Shown here: one piece after another, positions 30,848 to 37,360 of the stretch
Position numbering within the stretch: the first letter of the stretch is position 1
How the letters are laid out: the number at the start of each line of letters is the position of its first letter
Origin: Neoconidiobolus thromboides FSU 785
Taxonomy: Eukaryota; Fungi; Entomophthoromycota
Assembly: GCA_025603075.1 (NCBI GenBank)
Contig: MU626290.1
Coordinates: forward strand, 82,987-146,986
Direction: 5' to 3'
Length of the DNA stretch: 64,000 nt
Program-made: the position numbers and the translations under genes
The notes under the pieces: model-generated
The model's database searches: none
Seen by the model: the letters and a program-made list of their open reading frames with translations, nothing else
What the model was told of the DNA's origin: nothing

Positions 30848-31478
30848 TTTTTAAATTCAATTTCTCTTTTTTCTTTTTCTTTATATACTTTTTTGTTCTG
30901 ATTGCAATTTCTATTTTAAACTTGATTTTGGTTCCTTTTCATCCCTTAATTTTAATCAATGTTACAAAGCATGCTACTTTACACTTGAATTTTTATTTTA
31001 ATATTACACCCCGTAAAAGCTTAAGGAAATAAATTAAAAATAGGCATTATACTTCTTTAATAAAAGGCAAAGTATTATTATACATCTGTTACTAGTATTA
31101 GTATCTCATAACCAAATAGACCTATTATATTTTGTTTATTGAAAGGGGGTTTAAGGGTTAAGAAAATTCTGCTTACGCTATCATGATTTGAACTTTATTC
31201 TTTTTATCAAACTTTACAGGTTCATTATTCAAATGTTAATAACAAACAATCTCCGCCCCCATAGTGATGATTTATATAAACTGATTAATAAATCAGTAAT
31301 TCATCTTATTAATGTTAAGTTGTTTTTATTAAAATTGTTATTAAGCTTGATCCTGAAATATTATATTTTAAATAGTAAACTTTAATCTCAATGTTATACG
31401 GCTTTATGATGTATTAATATAAACCATAAATTTTTGTGCAAAATTATTTATGAAATAAAATATTTGATTGTAACACAT

Positions 31479-31571
31479 GGGTATGTATTTGTTTGAGAAT
31501 TTTACCAACGATCTTTCCACTCAAATAATATTTGAAAAATGGAAAAAGGGAGGAAATCAAAAAATATCCTC
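31479..31571 (+). mobile_element. MITE copy 11 (diverged)
   Basis: AT|GGGTATGT...ATATCCTC|AT with family core. Confidence 0.8.
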
Positions 31572-32088
31572 ATATTTTTTCCAAGTGTTAAACTTTCTGA
31601 AATTAGCTTAAGAAATAAAATTATAAAGCTTAAAAGTAGAAAGTGTGCAATTTTACCTAAAAAACTACATTTAGCTATTCTGATAGATTATTTATGATAT
31701 TCATAAACTTCTCTAGTTAGCTATACTACATCTTATTTATTACTACTATGTACATTAATGTCACTTTCATCACTTTGTTAAAATCTACAGCTAATTTTTT
31801 TTATATTTAAGTTATTTAAAGCTAGACTTTAGATATGTTTTTAGTACTTTTAAAATAATAAGCTTAAATTATAGCTATTATATAAAAAAATCACTACATA
31901 TACAACAGATAAAAATTAAGTAATTTGTTAATAGAACATTAATAACTCTACAATTAGTTTAAATACAATTTAAAAAATTTACTTCATATTATGTTAAAGC
32001 TTACTTTTATCAATAAATTAATATATTGTCATACATTAATGGGTTTTTTATGTCTAATAATTAGAGCTATTTACTATATTAAAGTTAT

Positions 32089-32186
32089 GGGGATGTTTCT
32101 TTGGCTTCATCACTTTTTCCATCTTTTAAGCACTATTTCAGTGGGAAAATTGTTAGTAAAATTCTTAAATACAAAAATACATCCCC
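32089..32186 (-). mobile_element. MITE copy 12
   Basis: GGGGATGT...ACATCCCC, reverse core. Confidence 0.9.
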
Positions 32187-32243
32187 TTATCATCAAGATA
32201 TTTTCATAAATTTTTATTAAATTATGAAACTATAATTTTATAT

Positions 32244-32340
32244 GGGGATGTCTTTTTTAGTTTTATCATCTTTTTCATTTTTAAGTACTATTTGAGCAGA
32301 AAGATTGCTAGCAAAATCCTTAAACAAAAAATACATCTCC
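32244..32340 (-). mobile_element. MITE copy 13
   Basis: Reverse core, AT flanks, 57 bp from copy 12. Confidence 0.88.
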
Positions 32341-33059
32341 ATATTAATCCAAAAATATTGATATTTCTTGAAAGTAAGTATCTGATATTACTAATACAAT
32401 ACTCTCCTTATTCAAAACGTTTGTATTCAAGGAATAATTTGTAAAACTAAGAAATATGTTTTCTAAATTTATAATTGGCTTAAATCGTTGGTTTTCTATT
32501 TGTCTTCTGGTTAAATACCTCTGACAGTCAAATCCTTTCTCTATATTCAAAGGATTCCTTCAATTTTTCTATAAAATCAATTACTTTGATTGTTATCTCA
32601 ACTTGTTTTATATCGTGTTTGTTTTCAGTTTTAATTTACCAATATCCTAGACCATCTACAAAGTCAATATTGATTCCCCTCCATTTGGAGCTGCCTTACA
32701 CAATTCTCCTCTTCATATATGTACCAGATAATTAAGTGGAAAAATGATTTCCTCATTAACAAAGTGAATTTATCGCAGAACTGGAGCGAACGAGAAGCTT
32801 TAGCTTTTGACACTCTTTTCTCTTCAAATTTTCTTTAATTGTATTAATAAATTATTTAAGAACACAAGGTCAAGAATTTTAAAGAATAAATCGTTATTAA
32901 AAATTGATAAAAAGAGCTTCAATTATAAATAGCATAAATCATAGTAGCTGATATACTATTGTGATCTTAATCGATCATGCTTTCACTTAATAAGTGTGTC
33001 TTAATAAGTGCGTCTTAAAAAGTATATTAATTTTATTTTATAATACGCTAGAACTATAT

Positions 33060-33330
33060 TAAAGAAAAATTTCACTGTACCAAACTCCACTTTTCAAAGA
33101 TTTCAGGAATTTAAAACCAAAAATTCGCCATAAATTAGTACTATTTATACTGTAGGACACTTTCCGAAGAGTTAATCTAGAAAATTTGATATGGTCTTAG
33201 ATCCTCTACTGCAAATCCCACTTTACACTCTTTTAAAGGTCATTTAATCCCTGATTTATCTCCACCTTGAATTCAGCAATGTTGGTTTAACCACTGAACA
33301 TGATAAAAAAATTTGTAGCCTTGAATTTTA
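33060..33330 (-). pseudogene. Relic ORF with in-frame TAA/TAG stops
   Basis: Reads MFSG*TNIAEFKVEINQGLNDL*KSVKWDLQ*RI*DHIKFSRLTLRKVSYS...; internal stops are all TAA/TAG. Confidence 0.4.
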
Positions 33331-33951
33331 AAAAGAATAAAAGCTAAATAAAATTTCGATGTTGGAAAGGTTAGCTTGAAGATATAACTTAAGGCTATTA
33401 GAAATATAAATCGCTTATTTAATCAATTGTTAAAAAACAAAGCATATTAATAAGAACAGGTATTATAGCTATGAAAGAACTGGATAACTCAAAATTACTT
33501 AAAATAGATCAATAAACAACAATTACATTGTTTGAAGTAATATAACTTTATTTAGAAAAAGCTATAGAGTATTAAAACAAAGAGCAGAAGATCTTTTTTC
33601 TCCATATCTTTTTTATAAGATTGTGTTTTAGTTGTTAATTTATAATATTAAAAACTTTTTTGTTTTCTATCTCAGTCAAGCATCATATCACCAGAAAAGC
33701 TACCAAAAAACCAAACTACAACTGAGTAATGCTTCAATGAAAAATAGGTTAAATCATACTTGCATACAAAATTTGATAATAATTGATTTGGAAACAAAAA
33801 AGGAAAAATAAGGGATAGATTACATGAGAATTCCAATTAATATCACATCTGAAATACCAAAGTCGATGATGCAAAAGTTACCACTAATTTTTCGTAAAAT
33901 ATAAAAGGTTGGTATTCAAACGTTACCACGGCTTTTTAACTTTATTAAACT

Positions 33952-36474
33952 ATGGTGAACTTAACTATGGACAACATTCGTGCTATGATGGGCAAGCCAT
34001 CTAATATCCGTAATGTGGCTGTTATAGGGCACGTTGACCACGGAAAATCTACATTGGTTGATTCTTTAATATCAAAGGCTAGAATCGTTCCAACAAATAA
34101 TACTAGAAACACCAGTGGCACTGTCATCAGTCAAGATAAGCAAGATCAGTATAATACTAAATCTACTTCTACTCCTTTACACTTTGGATTGCCAGAGGAG
34201 AGTACGAAAATTATTAACCAAGAAACAAATGGTGGTGAATTTTTGGTCAATCTAATTGAGCTGCCAGCATATACTAGCTTCTCAACAGGAATAGCTAATG
34301 CACTTCGAGTTACTGATGGCACCTTGGTTATTTTGGATTGTATCGATGGTTTATGTGTACAAACAGAAAGTACTTTACGTCTAGCTCTTACTGAAGCAAT
34401 CAAGCCTATATTGGTCCTAAACAAATTAGATCGTGCTATATTTGAGCTTCAACTTGAAAAAGAAGAACTTTATCAATCTTTACGCCGTAGAATCGATAAT
34501 TTCAATATAACTATCTCTACCTATACTGATAATGAATCAGGAACTACTCGAGTTGATGCAAAAGATGGAACAGTTGCTTTTAGTTCTGGTCTTGGTGGAT
34601 GGGCCTTTACTCTTCGTCAGTTTGCTGAAATCTATTATAAGAAATTTGGTGTCGATAAAGAAAAACTTATGAAAGTCCTTTGGGGCGACTATTATTATAT
34701 CCCAGAGTCCAAAAGATGGATTAACAAAGCTAATGCTTCTGATAATAACTCCTTGGAGCGTAGTTTTAATATGTTAATTTTGGATCCTATTTATCGTATT
34801 TTTGACACAGTAATGAATTCTAAACGCGGTGAGCTTGAAAATCTACTAGAAAGATTAAATATACAACTCAACAATGAAGAGAAAGAGTTAAATGGAAAGC
34901 CTTTACTTAATATAGTTATGCGTAAATTTCTACCTGCTTCTGATGCGCTGCTTGAGATGGCTGTCATTCATCTTCCATCACCTGTTACTGCTCAAAAGTA
35001 TCGTGCTGCTACCCTTTATGAAGGACCAATTGATGACGAAGCCTGTACTGCTATTAGAAAATGTGATCCAAATGGCCCTTTAATGGCTTATATATCTAAA
35101 ATGGTACCGATTTCTGATAGCGGCCGTTTCTATGCTTTTGGTCGTATTTTTTCAGGTACTGCTCGCTCAGGTCTTAAAGTGCGTATTCAAGGCCCTAACT
35201 ATATCCCAGGTAAAGATGATGACCTTTTTATTAAACCTATTGAGAGTACTATCCTTGTGACAGGACATTATTTTGAGTCTATCGAGGATTGTCCAGCTGG
35301 TAACATTATTGGTTTTACTGGTGTTGATCAATTTCTTCTCAAATCTGGTACAATTACTACTTTAGAAACAGCTTTTAACATCAAAACTATGAAATTTTCT
35401 ACTGCATCTGTAGTACAAGTTGCTGTTGATGTTAAGAATCCTGATGATTTACCAAAGCTAATTGAAGGCCTTAAACGTTTATCCAAGTCTGACCCACTTG
35501 TACAATGCTTCACTTCTGAATCTGGTCAACATATTATTAGTGGTACCGGAGAGTTACACCTTGAAATGTCTATCGATGACCTTCAGAAAGAATATACTGG
35601 TGTACCTATTAAAGCTAGTGACTTATCTGTACAATATTGCGAAACAGTTCAAACTGAATCTCTAAAATCAAATTCATCTGAATCCCCAAACAACTATAAC
35701 CGAATTTATATGAAAGTAGGGCCATTAGATATGTCTATTGTATCAGAGATTGAGAAAGGAAAAATTAGCTCAAAAGACGACGATGAAGCTATCTCTCGTT
35801 ACCTTTTTGAGAACCATGGTTGGGATATCAATGCTGGTCGTCGTATATGGTGTTTTGGTCCAGAAGATGCTGGAACTAACCTTTTAGTTGATGAAACTAA
35901 AGACATAACATACCTTTCTGAAATTAAGAATTCATGTAATAGTGCTTTTCAATGGGCGACCAAGGAAGGTGCTTTATGTGGGGAGAAGATGAGAGCCACA
36001 TGTTTTAATATCACTGACGCTGTACTACATGCTAATGCTATTCATCGTGGTGACGATCAAATTATTCCTATGTGCCGCCGTGTTATCCATGGATCACAGC
36101 TTAAAGCTGAGCCGACATTACTTGAGCCTGTTTATTCGGTTGAGATTGAAGTTCCAAACGAGGTTTTAAGTAGTGCACAGTCACTAATATTAAAACGTCG
36201 TGGGTACATAGAAAATATAGCTGAGGGCCCAGGTAATCTTGTCTCTATCCTTGAAGGTTACCTACCTGTCAGTGAGTCATTTGGTTTCCATGAAGCCTTA
36301 ATTTCGAGTACCCGTGGTAGAGCTTTGCTAAAACTTACTTTTAGTCATTGGAATGTAGTTCCTGGTTCCATTTATGAACCTGGATTAGTATCCTCAATTA
36401 TCTTTAAGATACGTGAACGCAAAGGGCTCAAACCAGAGATTCCATCGCCTAATGACTATTTGAATAAGCTATAA
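33952..36474 (+). CDS. EFT2: Divergent, intronless elongation factor 2 paralog (840 aa) with degenerate GTPase motifs
   Basis: Colinear with eEF2 over the full length (GHVDHGKST, ALRVTDG, NKLD, GWAFTLRQFA, EGLKRLSKSDP, GTGELHLE, AFQWATKEG, AIHRG, YLPVSESFGF) but DSPGH reads ELPAY. Confidence 0.93.
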   Translation: MVNLTMDNIRAMMGKPSNIRNVAVIGHVDHGKSTLVDSLISKARIVPTNNTRNTSGTVISQDKQDQYNTKSTSTPLHFGLPEESTKIINQETNGGEFLVNLIELPAYTSFSTGIANALRVTDGTLVILDCIDGLCVQTESTLRLALTEAIKPILVLNKLDRAIFELQLEKEELYQSLRRRIDNFNITISTYTDNESGTTRVDAKDGTVAFSSGLGGWAFTLRQFAEIYYKKFGVDKEKLMKVLWGDYYYIPESKRWINKANASDNNSLERSFNMLILDPIYRIFDTVMNSKRGELENLLERLNIQLNNEEKELNGKPLLNIVMRKFLPASDALLEMAVIHLPSPVTAQKYRAATLYEGPIDDEACTAIRKCDPNGPLMAYISKMVPISDSGRFYAFGRIFSGTARSGLKVRIQGPNYIPGKDDDLFIKPIESTILVTGHYFESIEDCPAGNIIGFTGVDQFLLKSGTITTLETAFNIKTMKFSTASVVQVAVDVKNPDDLPKLIEGLKRLSKSDPLVQCFTSESGQHIISGTGELHLEMSIDDLQKEYTGVPIKASDLSVQYCETVQTESLKSNSSESPNNYNRIYMKVGPLDMSIVSEIEKGKISSKDDDEAISRYLFENHGWDINAGRRIWCFGPEDAGTNLLVDETKDITYLSEIKNSCNSAFQWATKEGALCGEKMRATCFNITDAVLHANAIHRGDDQIIPMCRRVIHGSQLKAEPTLLEPVYSVEIEVPNEVLSSAQSLILKRRGYIENIAEGPGNLVSILEGYLPVSESFGFHEALISSTRGRALLKLTFSHWNVVPGSIYEPGLVSSIIFKIRERKGLKPEIPSPNDYLNKL

Positions 36475-36533
36475 GCAAGTTTCAAAAATTTATTAATAGT
36501 TATAGCATTATAAATAACTAGTAATTATAATAT

Positions 36534-36633
36534 GTGATGATGTTTTTTTTTGGCTTCATCACTTTTTTCATTTTTTAAGCATTATTGATCGGAAAGATTG
36601 TTAGTAAAGTCCTTAAACAAAAAATAAATCCCT
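36534..36633 (-). mobile_element. MITE copy 14
   Basis: Reverse core, about 60 bp after the eEF2-like stop codon. Confidence 0.83.
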
Positions 36634-37126
36634 ATGTGCTACTAATAAAGCTTTAAAATATTTGCTCGACTTTAGACTTTTAAGTTAAACACATGATATA
36701 TGGTATCTATAGACATCTGGCTATATTATTTGAATAAATATAAAATTGAGATGGACCTGAAGTAGAGCTATTAGTTCTATTTTTTTAATATTAAACCTTA
36801 AAATCTAGAATATATCAAGGAAATTAAACTTGTTTATAAATAGTTGAAACTAAAAGGTATGGTAACAATAGCCTTAAGATATTTTTTATACAGGTAAAAG
36901 AACAGAATAGTAGACTTGTGAAAGTATTTTAATTTATTTCATCTTTAGATTTAACAATGTGATATTACAATATCATTAATAACCATTGATTTATTCCCTA
37001 TCAATAATTTTTATCGATTGAATGAATTTTAACTAAATATCAGTTTTATAAAAAATAAAATTATTATCTCATAATTGACAAATAACTCAAATTCTATGAG
37101 AGTTCAGACGATTGTTTAAGCTATAT

Positions 37127-37221
37127 AGAGGTGTTTTTTTATTTTATTACTTTTTGCATCTTTTAAACACTATTTGAGCATAAAAATTGTTAGTAATTCT
37201 TAAACACAAAAATATATCCCT
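37127..37221 (-). mobile_element. MITE copy 15
   Basis: Reverse core, AT flanks; shares a 2-nt deletion with copy 2. Confidence 0.83.
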
Positions 37222-37360
37222 ATATACTAACTTAATACAGAATAAAATTTAAAATTAAGTACTGACTACATAATAAATACTAAATAAGTAACAAATGAGT
37301 TGTTCTTAAACTTTTATTTTAATTAATTTATGAAAAATTAATACTAAGTCTATTACAAAT

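Follow-up and report, generated by a model that had tools for sequence, protein, structure and literature searches.

A third, divergent eEF2 copy in Neoconidiobolus thromboides that is transcribed, kept under purifying selection and predicted to be deficient in GTP hydrolysis

Neoconidiobolus thromboides, an insect-pathogenic fungus, possesses in strain FSU 785 a third full-length copy of the elongation factor eEF2 (referred to here as Q) beside two normal ones, copies A and B, which are both canonical and intronless. Q is transcribed, and it is kept under purifying selection over the long term as well as between present-day strains. We consider it likely, with a probability of roughly 0.6, that Q is a nucleotide-binding, hydrolysis-deficient eEF2 paralogue which has left the job of translocase, a reading based on the motifs and residue changes described below. 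The assignment to this strain agrees with two of its named proteins, which the genome matches exactly. The gene lies within a stretch of 64,000 nucleotides that was analysed as a whole (the window), where the following coding features were assigned.

33952..36474, plus strand: intact coding sequence of Q, a divergent eEF2 paralogue, 840 codons (ORF, Pfam, structure alignment)
34027..34053, plus strand: G1/P-loop GHVDHGKST, residues 26-34, kept including the P-loop Asp (local omega of Q 0.30)
34111..34167, plus strand: switch I, residues 54-72, rewritten, with a one-residue deletion and loss of the RFTDTR phospho-site segment (local omega of Q 0.50)
34258..34293, plus strand: G3 and switch II, ELPAYTSFSTGI versus the canonical DSPGHVDFSSEV (alignment to eEF2s)
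34420..34431, plus strand: G4 NKLD, residues 157-160, kept (local omega of Q 0.25)
34927..35376, plus strand: most constrained block, residues 326-475 (end of the G' insert and domain II), 60-84% identity to copy A per 25-residue window (sliding-window omega of Q 0.08-0.25)
35677..35703, plus strand: domain IV loop SESPNNYNR, residues 576-584 (canonical SKSPNKHNR), with yeast K582 replaced by N and H583 by Y (alignment)
36028..36060, plus strand: diphthamide loop HANAIHRGDDQ, residues 693-703 (canonical HADAIHRGGGQ), with D696 replaced by N and GG by DD (alignment)
36178..36180, plus strand: Gln743 in place of yeast Tyr744, domain V (alignment)

The ORF starts with ATG, has no internal stops and encodes a protein of 840 amino acids in which Pfam recognizes GTP_EFTU, D2, EFG_III, EFG_IV and EFG_C, which are all of the EF2 domains. 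The five-domain architecture of eEF2 (G with its G' insert, II, III, IV and V) is colinear over the 840 residues, and Q aligns end-to-end with the solved eEF2 structures (7old_C, 1039 bits; yeast 1n0u_A, 1002 bits) at about 57% identity over the full length, a level at which its fold is not in doubt. Identity is 60% to copy A (P0003) and 58% to copy B (P0007). The scores of Q are about 1000 bits against eEF2, 534 against Snu114 and 335 against EFL1. A role as substitute for Snu114 or EFL1 is excluded, as canonical versions of both are found elsewhere in the genome, Snu114 on contig C50 and EFL1 as a separate gene. A first-pass annotation of the window had described an eEF2 paralogue of full length whose GTPase centre is impaired, and the ORF, Pfam, structure alignments and motifs confirm this description. 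The canonical eEF2 locus which that annotation would have had located proved to be two loci of the same genome, copies A and B. Assembly error at the motif codons, which it had foreseen as a possible source of the substitutions, is ruled out, since over the ORF the run X1 contigs match the window without a difference (depth 116-157) and those of runs X4 and X6 confirm E103 and Y107.

Within the G domain, the motifs that hold the nucleotide are kept. The G5 region (SSGL) is retained along with G1 and G4, and windows around the three have local omega (dN/dS) values of 0.25-0.30. Switch I of Q (residues 54-72) reads TSGTVISQDKQDQYNT-KST, and the rewriting, with its deleted residue, extends over residues 46-72; for G1, G4 and switch I the initial description had been accurate. 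The G3 motif is ELPAY in the reference strain versus DSPGH in all 117 of the 117 eEF2s compared, such that the Asp of DxxG is replaced by Glu (E103) and Tyr (Y107) stands at the site of the catalytic His (yeast H108). The original claim that the DxxG Asp, the Gly and the following His are all replaced stands for Asp and His, both of which are altered in all three haplotypes, and for Gly in the reference strain only. Codon 106 is polymorphic, with Ala in the reference strain and GGA (Gly) in two other strains (runs X4 and X6), which gives ELPGY; loss of the DxxG Gly is limited to the reference strain.

The His of switch II (H108) has a catalytic role (PMC4896748, PMC5084732). It is held to be universal among translational GTPases and essential for ribosome-stimulated hydrolysis, which is abolished upon mutation of this residue in EF-Tu, EF-G and IF2 (PMC5084732). 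Q displays the sequence pattern of a pseudo-GTPase, in that the catalytic His is replaced by Tyr while G1, G4 and G5 are kept. Judged by these motifs, Q would still bind guanine nucleotide, and ribosome-stimulated hydrolysis would be unable to switch it off. Its activity may then be that of a 'pseudo-GTPase' which binds or scaffolds other molecules, in the way that Snu114 functions in the spliceosome.

Like canonical eEF2 (yeast Eft1/Eft2; 1n0u, 7old), Q consists of five domains with a G' insert and retains G1, G4 and the diphthamide His; it differs in having ELP(A/G)Y for DSPGH, a rewritten switch I, K582N/H583Y, D696N, GG to DD and Y744Q. Several of these changes fall at surfaces with which eEF2 contacts the ribosome. 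H583 is a member of the decoding-centre triad, and Tyr744 of yeast domain V stacks on helix 44 of 25S rRNA at the P-stalk base (PMC4896748). The tip of domain IV (the SPNKHNR loop and the H583/H694/Diph699 triad) is not intact in Q, as one of its three histidines is altered; the diphthamide loop keeps H693 and H698, which correspond to yeast H694 and H699, the latter being the diphthamide His. In addition, the replacement of K613 by Glu reverses a charge in the cluster facing h33/h34 of 18S rRNA. Overall, 74 of the 296 invariant columns of eEF2 are replaced in Q and none in copies A and B. That Q is still a working translocase which relies on unusual catalysis, for example as a specialised or a toxin- or drug-resistant isoform, would be compatible with its full length and with retention of G1, G4 and the diphthamide His. 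We regard this as highly improbable given the universal and essential nature ascribed to the switch II His (PMC5084732), the 74 replaced invariant positions, the changes at K582/H583 of the tip loop and at D696, and the presence of two canonical copies that are apparently far more abundant.

Transcription of Q was assessed from RNA-type contigs, and two further features were assigned outside the coding sequence.

33901..33908, plus strand: TATA-like box TATAAAAG, 44 nt upstream of the ATG, a probable core promoter whose role is deduced from sequence and contig starts
36475..36863, plus strand: probable 3' UTR with one copy (36546-36635) of a dispersed repeat of about 95 nt (X1 contig 35284-36863; repeat family)

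RNA-type contigs from three studies cover the Q ORF and show the gene to be transcribed; X6 and X7 are RNA-Seq according to their records, and the RNA label of X1 and X4 is a guess. These contigs start at 33955-33972, with no cover at 33554-33934, and those of X1 cover 33971-36863, are absent from the 380 nt upstream and have depths very different from the flank. All of the runs consist of assembled contigs, which give transcript ends and levels indirectly; read in this way, the contig starts fit a very short 5' UTR, and the apparent depth of Q in run X1 is about 2% of that of copy A.

The surroundings of Q were initially thought to be special in being gene-poor and rich in MITEs, a view that did not hold up, because the repeat is found genome-wide (at least 2876 first-look candidates) and the neighbours that match a family are ordinary genes. 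The nearest downstream ORF of at least 70 amino acids begins 0.9 kb past the stop codon of Q. Upstream, the nearest ORF (72 amino acids) ends 1.7 kb before the ATG and overlaps a repeat copy, and the nearest sizeable one lies 3.1 kb before it. Among the neighbouring genes, families could be assigned to a KCH potassium channel, a BCKDH kinase, an amino-acid transporter and, by a weak match, a hydrolase. A gene-cluster context, biosynthetic or toxin-related, in which Q might serve in self-resistance or as a decoy was considered and rejected, as the neighbours suggest nothing of the kind.

Long-term selection was estimated with our own implementation of a four-taxon codon model, in which dN/dS on the Q branch is 0.26-0.33 versus a background of 0.04, values that are approximate since dS is near saturation (0.9-1.5 between Q and copy A). 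The likelihood-ratio statistic is 115 against a single ratio and 16.7 against an omega of 1 for Q (p = 4e-5). Omega is about 8-fold above that of the canonical sisters, and the nonsynonymous evolution of Q is about 8 times faster. Codon bias is weaker in Q (ENC 41.7) than in copy A (38.3) or copy B (30.3). Despite approximately 330 amino-acid changes, there is not one stop or frameshift in Q, in an AT-rich genome. Constraint remains graded by column conservation and by domain, with omega values of 0.15 for domain II, 0.28 for III, 0.28 for G', 0.34 for IV, 0.38 for G, 0.61 for V and 0.77 for the tail, so that the comparison by domain which had been suggested ranges from 0.15 to 0.77. Windows at switch I and switch II have an omega of 0.5, and helix D and the G' crevice one of 0.5-0.65. 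The weakest constraint is thus found in the switch regions, domain V and the C-terminal tail, and the strongest in domains II and III, residues 501-525 being strongly constrained as are residues 326-475.

Variation among strains points in the same direction. Two other strains differ from the reference Q by about 1%, with no indels and no stops. The three haplotypes have 32 variable sites, 16 synonymous and 16 nonsynonymous, versus a spectrum-matched neutral expectation of 21.9 nonsynonymous, 9.5 synonymous and 0.6 stops; the nonsynonymous deficit has a P of about 0.01, and the ratio of about 0.3-0.4 from these 32 sites indicates moderate constraint only. Several nonsynonymous variants (L377F, D543N, C662F) fall at positions that are invariant in canonical eEF2. 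In a rough McDonald-Kreitman comparison, Pn/Ps is 16/16 and Dn/Ds along the Q branch is roughly 440/340, so that fixed nonsynonymous changes are not in excess, and adaptive evolution of Q is therefore not claimed. The first-pass annotation had proposed that the gene is kept by selection, and both the rejection of an omega of 1 and the nonsynonymous deficit among strains uphold this proposal; a dN/dS near 1 coupled with lack of expression, which it had anticipated for a young pseudogene, did not occur, with an omega of 0.26-0.33 and RNA-type contigs over the ORF.

These data bear most directly on the idea that Q is a redundant copy drifting towards a pseudogene and transcribed by inertia. Such drift would account for the 8-fold higher omega relative to the sister copies, the strain variants at canonically invariant residues, the weaker codon bias, and the failure to find an orthologue or to find Q in the public protein collection searched. 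It is an improbable explanation nonetheless. About 2% of random substitutions in the Q ORF create a stop (0.6/32), and neutral evolution over more than about 1-2% divergence is unlikely because it would be expected to break the ORF, which is intact in all three haplotypes after some 330 amino-acid changes in an AT-rich genome. Rejection of an omega of 1, the nonsynonymous deficit and the graded constraint by column and domain also argue against it.

If Q is a hydrolysis-deficient paralogue as we favour, the distribution of constraint suggests where it may act. Domains II and III are its best-conserved surface and may form its working interface, which in eEF2 faces the 40S body. On the 60S side, the contact residues have deteriorated, and binding to the ribosome there is doubtful. 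Q probably acts by binding and not by moving the ribosome, and its most likely role would be that of a low-abundance regulator which binds the ribosome or a partner of eEF2 rather than of a translocation catalyst.

A stronger version, which the first-pass annotation had offered alongside a decoy for eEF2-targeting toxins, holds that Q docks in the A-site and GTPase-associated centre as eEF2 does, is unable to hydrolyse GTP and stays bound, acting as a stage-specific brake or spore hibernation factor. The full eEF2 fold with its nucleotide-holding motifs and missing catalytic His, the loss of ribosome-stimulated hydrolysis in the corresponding His mutants of EF-Tu, EF-G and IF2 (PMC5084732), the two of three tip histidines that are kept, including the diphthamide His, and the location of the most constrained domains, II and III, facing the 40S body are all in keeping with this version. 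The elements of 60S docking, however, are changed or relaxed (H108 to Y, Y744 to Q, helix D and G' crevice omega 0.5-0.65, domain V 0.61), and K613 to E reverses a charge facing h33/h34 of 18S rRNA. A stoichiometric clamp or sponge is argued against in the sampled condition because the 60S docking residues are changed and the depth of Q in run X1, about 2% of that of A, is too low. We judge it unlikely that Q is a stably docked factor of this sort, and rate equally low a hydrolysis-dead eEF2 that would enter the factor site, hold on to the 40S body chiefly by domains II and III and, at particular stages or under stress, brake translation or act as a hibernation clamp.

In phylogenetic trees, Q falls inside the entomophthoralean eEF2 clade (support 100/99), with its best placement as sister of copy A; a grouping of Q with copy B is rejected (AU test, p = 0.002). 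Its end branch is 3.05 versus a median of 0.13, or about 25 times longer. The first-pass annotation had taken the absence of introns as a sign of a retrocopy. Intronlessness is no evidence of such an origin, because copies A and B and the eEF2 gene of Entomophthora muscae are each a single ORF without introns, and a retrocopy origin is rejected as unsupported. Neither a poly(A) remnant nor target-site duplications were noticed in the flanks of Q, and at a dS of about 1 they would in any case have been lost.

Q appears to be young and lineage-restricted. The exact protein has no match in a collection of 15 billion proteins, a whole-protein search yielded nothing closer than the in-genome paralogues (60% identity), and a search with region 36-135 gave no match. 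Degenerate DNA patterns for an eEF2 G3 with His to Tyr and for the GDDQ loop had zero matches in metagenome contigs. Orthologues with the same substitutions, which had been thought worth seeking in related species, were thus found neither in the protein collection nor in the metagenome scans; these searches revealed no Q orthologue outside this species complex, which does not imply absence in unsequenced relatives. Q appears to be unannotated, because the exact protein is absent from the collection and nothing is closer than 60%. Literature searches likewise brought up no full-length eEF2 without the catalytic His.

Other members of the family offer partial parallels. Snu114 is ancient and universal and has an N-terminal extension, unlike Q, which is young and of eEF2 length, and it keeps the switch II His. 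Snu114/EFTUD2 resembles the proposed Q in that it is derived from eEF2 and seems fixed in the GTP-bound form with hydrolysis dispensable, which is a precedent for an eEF2 paralogue functioning in a permanently GTP-bound state (PMC7192624). Neofunctionalisation away from the ribosome, with Q as a GTP-loaded scaffold like Snu114 or as a binder of chaperones, diphthamide enzymes or kinases, would agree with the degraded switch and 60S-contact regions, with the strong constraint on residues 326-475 and 501-525, and with Snu114 and EFL1 as eEF2 paralogues that acquired new functions (PMC4342817, PMC7192624). The absence of an added domain or extension such as Snu114 and EFL1 have, the presence of canonical Snu114 and EFL1, by which those roles are filled, and a gene neighbourhood that points to no partner make a purely non-ribosomal role of this kind doubtful.

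Among translational GTPase superfamily members, Ski7 has lost catalytic features yet is retained. Like Q, aSelBL belongs to this superfamily, is thought to lack hydrolysis and has been retained (cited in PMC6143161), but aSelBL and Ski7 belong to the EF1/SelB and eRF3/Hbs1 branches and not to EF2. The archaeal aEF-2p is, like Q, a second EF-2 beside a canonical copy, judged unable to translocate and with domain IV loops that are not conserved; it keeps G1-G5, is predicted to hydrolyse GTP and has lost the diphthamide His, which is the reverse of Q (Narrowe et al. 2018, PMC6143161). Lineage-specific, highly divergent extra copies of eEF2, similar to Q in this respect, occur in protists such as Naegleria, and in the parts of that work considered here no loss of the His or selection test is stated for these duplicates and nothing comparable is described for fungi (Atkinson 2015, PMC4342817).

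Q represents a natural experiment in which an elongation-factor fold predicted to lack ribosome-triggered hydrolysis is transcribed and kept by selection. For structural and kinetic studies it provides a ready-made eEF2, predicted to be hydrolysis-deficient, in two naturally occurring alleles that carry Ala or Gly at the DxxG glycine position. Q is also a new example of regulators arising from essential translation factors, a course that Snu114 and EFL1 took long ago. If the clamp reading were true, Q would mark the first case, here in an early-diverging fungus, of a eukaryotic elongation-factor paralogue turned by evolution into a non-catalytic regulator dedicated to the ribosome.

The Q reading frame begins with ATG and carries the complete EF2 domain set in Pfam. 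Its alignment with solved eEF2 structures runs from the first residue to the last (7old_C, 1039 bits; yeast 1n0u_A, 1002 bits), and Snu114 (534 bits) and EFL1 (335 bits) match it much less well. The first-pass annotation had described an uninterrupted 840-codon frame colinear with eEF2 in which G1 and G4 are kept and switch I is rewritten, and the exact frame and the alignments bear out each of these points:

33952-36474, + strand: Q coding sequence, 840 codons, no internal stops
34258-34293: G3 and switch II of Q, ELPAYTSFSTGI
G1 of Q: GHVDHGKST
G4 of Q: NKLD
Switch I of Q, T54-T72: rewritten, with a one-residue deletion

DSPGH is found in 117/117 members of a comparison panel of eEF2s of similar length. 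Of the 296 columns invariant across this panel, 74 are changed in Q and none in copies A and B (P0003 and P0007), the two canonical eEF2s of the same genome. Replacement of the DxxG Asp and Gly and of the following His had also been proposed. Asp is replaced by Glu103 and His by Tyr107 in 3/3 haplotypes, but loss of the Gly is confined to the sequenced strain's allele: the reference has C at position 34268, and X4 and X6, the haplotypes of two other strains, have G, which changes Ala106 to Gly. Since Gly is universal at this site, the earlier form of the Q motif is ELPGY, and ELPAY is a variant allele carried by the sequenced strain. Codon 106 is thus a natural Ala/Gly polymorphism at the DxxG glycine, with the derived Ala in the reference.

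That Q is a gene rather than a wreck is supported by three independent lines, which are codon evolution, the open frame and present-day variation. Pairwise dN/dS between Q and copy A is 0.17-0.30, with dS (0.9-1.5) near saturation. In a custom GY94-type branch model on the four-taxon tree ((Q,A),(B,E. muscae)), where dS is likewise close to saturation, dN/dS on the Q branch (omega_Q) is 0.26-0.33, versus 0.04 on the background branches; two ratios fit better than one (LRT 115), and the model with omega_Q fixed at 1 is rejected (LRT 16.7, p = 4e-5). About 2% of random substitutions in the Q frame give a stop (0.6 of 32), with indels extra, so the frame should not have survived neutral evolution beyond roughly 1-2% divergence; it is intact despite about 330 amino-acid differences from copy A. 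The 32 variable sites in Q comprise 16 synonymous and 16 nonsynonymous changes and no stops, versus 9.5, 21.9 and 0.6 expected when the same mutation spectrum is placed randomly on the frame (P about 0.01 for the synonymous excess, in a small sample of 32 sites and three haplotypes). Present-day constraint on Q is genuine, if moderate, and about as strong as the long-term omega implies, and a rough McDonald-Kreitman comparison gives no sign of adaptive excess. The proposal that Q is kept by selection therefore stands, and a functionless copy in slow decay, which would fit the raised omega_Q but not the intact frame or the synonymous excess, is improbable.

The variants come from contigs without gaps relative to the window: one X4 contig of 2516 nt that spans 33955-36469 (22 substitutions) and two contigs from X6, a fish-gut RNA-Seq run (25 substitutions). 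Some nonsynonymous variants are derived in the reference (H77, N258, S729), and the other strains carry alleles at canonically invariant residues (L377F, D543N, C662F). The fish-gut metatranscriptome (2024; X6, X7) matches 33972-36250 at about 99% identity, so a close relative of N. thromboides is transcriptionally present there, whether living in the gut or carried in by infected insects that the fish had eaten.

Constraint is unevenly distributed along Q. By domain, omega_Q is 0.15 in II, 0.28 in III, 0.28 in G', 0.34 in IV, 0.38 in G, 0.61 in V and 0.77 in the C-terminal tail. In 25-codon windows it is lowest at residues 326-475 (0.08-0.25) and 501-525 (0.09), is 0.25-0.30 near G1, G4 and G5, and rises to 0.5 at switches I and II, 0.65 at residues 176-200, 0.65-0.75 at 751-800 and 1.0 at 801-825. 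Residues that contact the ribosome (PMC4896748) were located in Q through the 1n0u alignment, in yeast numbering:

Y744, stacks on H44 of the P-stalk base: Gln in Q
V754, stacks on H43: Ile in Q
Helix D and G' sheet, P0 crevice: relaxed in Q
K613, positive cluster over 18S h33/h34: Glu in Q
R617 and R631, same cluster: kept in Q
H583, domain IV tip triad: Tyr in Q
H694 and H699 (the diphthamide site), tip triad: kept in Q

In addition, K582 and D696 are both Asn, and both glycines after HRG are Asp. Taken together, the windows and the contact map indicate that the nucleotide-holding parts and the side facing the 40S body are preserved, and that the hydrolysis switch, the contacts with the 60S GTPase-associated centre and part of the decoding-centre tip are not.

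Absence of expression and assembly error at the motif codons had both been considered in the first-pass annotation. Neither is found, as the Q frame is covered by contigs from three studies (X1, X4 and X6/X7) and the X1 contigs are identical to the window over it. All runs were seen as assembled contigs, so that transcript levels, ends and strand are indirect. X1 totals 15.5 Mb versus the 24.6-Mb genome and covers 33971-35216 (depth 157) and 35284-36863 (depth 116), leaving 33554-33934 uncovered, with a flanking piece of depth 5 at 33300-33464. This is the pattern of a transcriptome and unlike that of a DNA library, the RNA label of X1 itself being a guess. The records of X6 and X7 give them as RNA-Seq, and the X4 contig covers the frame but not its unique flanks. 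The contigs begin 3-20 nt downstream of the ATG, and the 3' end lies near 36863, taking in one copy of a dispersed repeat of about 95 nt:

44 nt upstream of the Q ATG: TATAAAAG box
36546-36635, 32098-32187, 32253-32342 and 37135-37224: copies of the dispersed repeat

Across the genome, a first look gives at least 2876 candidate copies of the repeat, at about 85-90% identity. The copy at 36546-36635 lies inside the probable Q 3' UTR, and the repeat occurs at high depth in many RNA-type contigs. In the roughly 3.1 kb 5' of Q (30848-33951), ORFs on both strands reach at most 72 aa, and nothing recognizable lies at 33060-33330.

X1 depth jumps to 7593, 6850 and about 2816 in the bins or at the site containing the short stretches in which Q matches copy A (33974-34013, 34969-35009) or copy B (35273-35333) at 90% identity or more. 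These spikes probably derive from copy A and B contigs, which suggests a Q level of about 2% that of A and 5% that of B in this sample, contig depth being a poor measure of expression. The effective number of codons points in the same direction (Q 41.7, A 38.3, B 30.3). Codon bias is stronger in B than in A (30 vs 38), and X1 abundance is apparently higher for A.

The canonical loci, which the first-pass annotation had proposed to find, were recovered by a six-frame search of the 24.6-Mb assembly as two further full-length, stop-free, intronless frames that encode exactly P0003 and P0007, eEF2-type proteins from Neoconidiobolus thromboides FSU 785:

G000:C131:28203-30725, + strand: copy A (L002), canonical
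G000:C30:93067-95592, - strand: copy B (L003), canonical

The eEF2 gene of Entomophthora muscae is also a single ORF. Intronless eEF2 genes are therefore the norm in this order, and the lack of introns lends no support to the retrocopy origin that had been read from it. The Massospora cicadina eEF2 (L012) spans 2624 nt for 839 aa and is not translatable straight through; in contrast to its E. muscae and N. thromboides counterparts, it seems to be interrupted near the start by a short intron or to reflect a quirk of the gene model there. Separate EFL1 (C62) and Snu114 (C50) genes rule out Q as a replacement for either and make it an extra family member.

In a maximum-likelihood tree of 32 fungal eEF2s (LG+C20), Q falls within the entomophthoralean clade (100/99) on an end branch of 3.05 substitutions per site (median 0.13), and is best placed as sister to copy A (94/73). 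The AU test rejects Q with B (p = 0.002) and retains a Q branch immediately outside the group of four canonical entomophthoralean sequences (p = 0.17). At the nucleotide level, Q and A are 71% identical, Q and B 64%, and A and B 76%. Copies A and B are well diverged (dN 0.14, dS >1.2); B clusters with Entomophthora and Massospora, and A, with Q, branches outside those, which suggests that the A/B duplication predates these lineages. The exact Q protein has no entry in a collection of 15 billion proteins, and its nearest homology matches are the in-genome paralogues (60%), so Q appears to be unannotated. Homology searches with the whole protein and with residues 36-135, and DNA pattern scans of metagenome contigs, found no Q orthologue beyond this species complex, which does not prove absence.

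Q is thus retained and transcribed, has the eEF2 fold and has lost the catalytic His. Translational GTPases all conserve the switch II His, and EF-Tu, EF-G and IF2 lose ribosome-stimulated hydrolysis when it is replaced (PMC5084732); translocation requires the domain IV tip (PMC4896748). We consider a selected, hydrolysis-deficient non-translocase the best reading of Q, with a probability of about 0.6. Translocation would be lost, and Q would probably still bind guanine nucleotide that the ribosome could not turn over. That Q is still a working translocase, as its kept G1, G4 and diphthamide site might allow, is very improbable. A hydrolysis-deficient Q would then act through binding, by analogy with Snu114, which acts in a fixed GTP state (PMC7192624). 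It is possible, though unlikely, that it serves as a brake or clamp at the ribosomal factor site, for which the 40S-facing side is preserved and the 60S contacts are not; a non-ribosomal or partner-binding role is equally tentative.

Snu114 and EFL1/Ria1 are products of ancient eEF2 duplications, and the same paper also notes divergent species-specific eEF2 copies in protists (PMC4342817). A literature search found nothing on the Q gene, nor any full-length eukaryotic eEF2 described as lacking the catalytic His. The aEF-2p of some archaea, which has lost the domain IV loops and kept G1-G5, is the mirror image of Q (PMC6143161). Judged from its sequence, Q would be a translation-GTPase paralogue that has turned non-catalytic.
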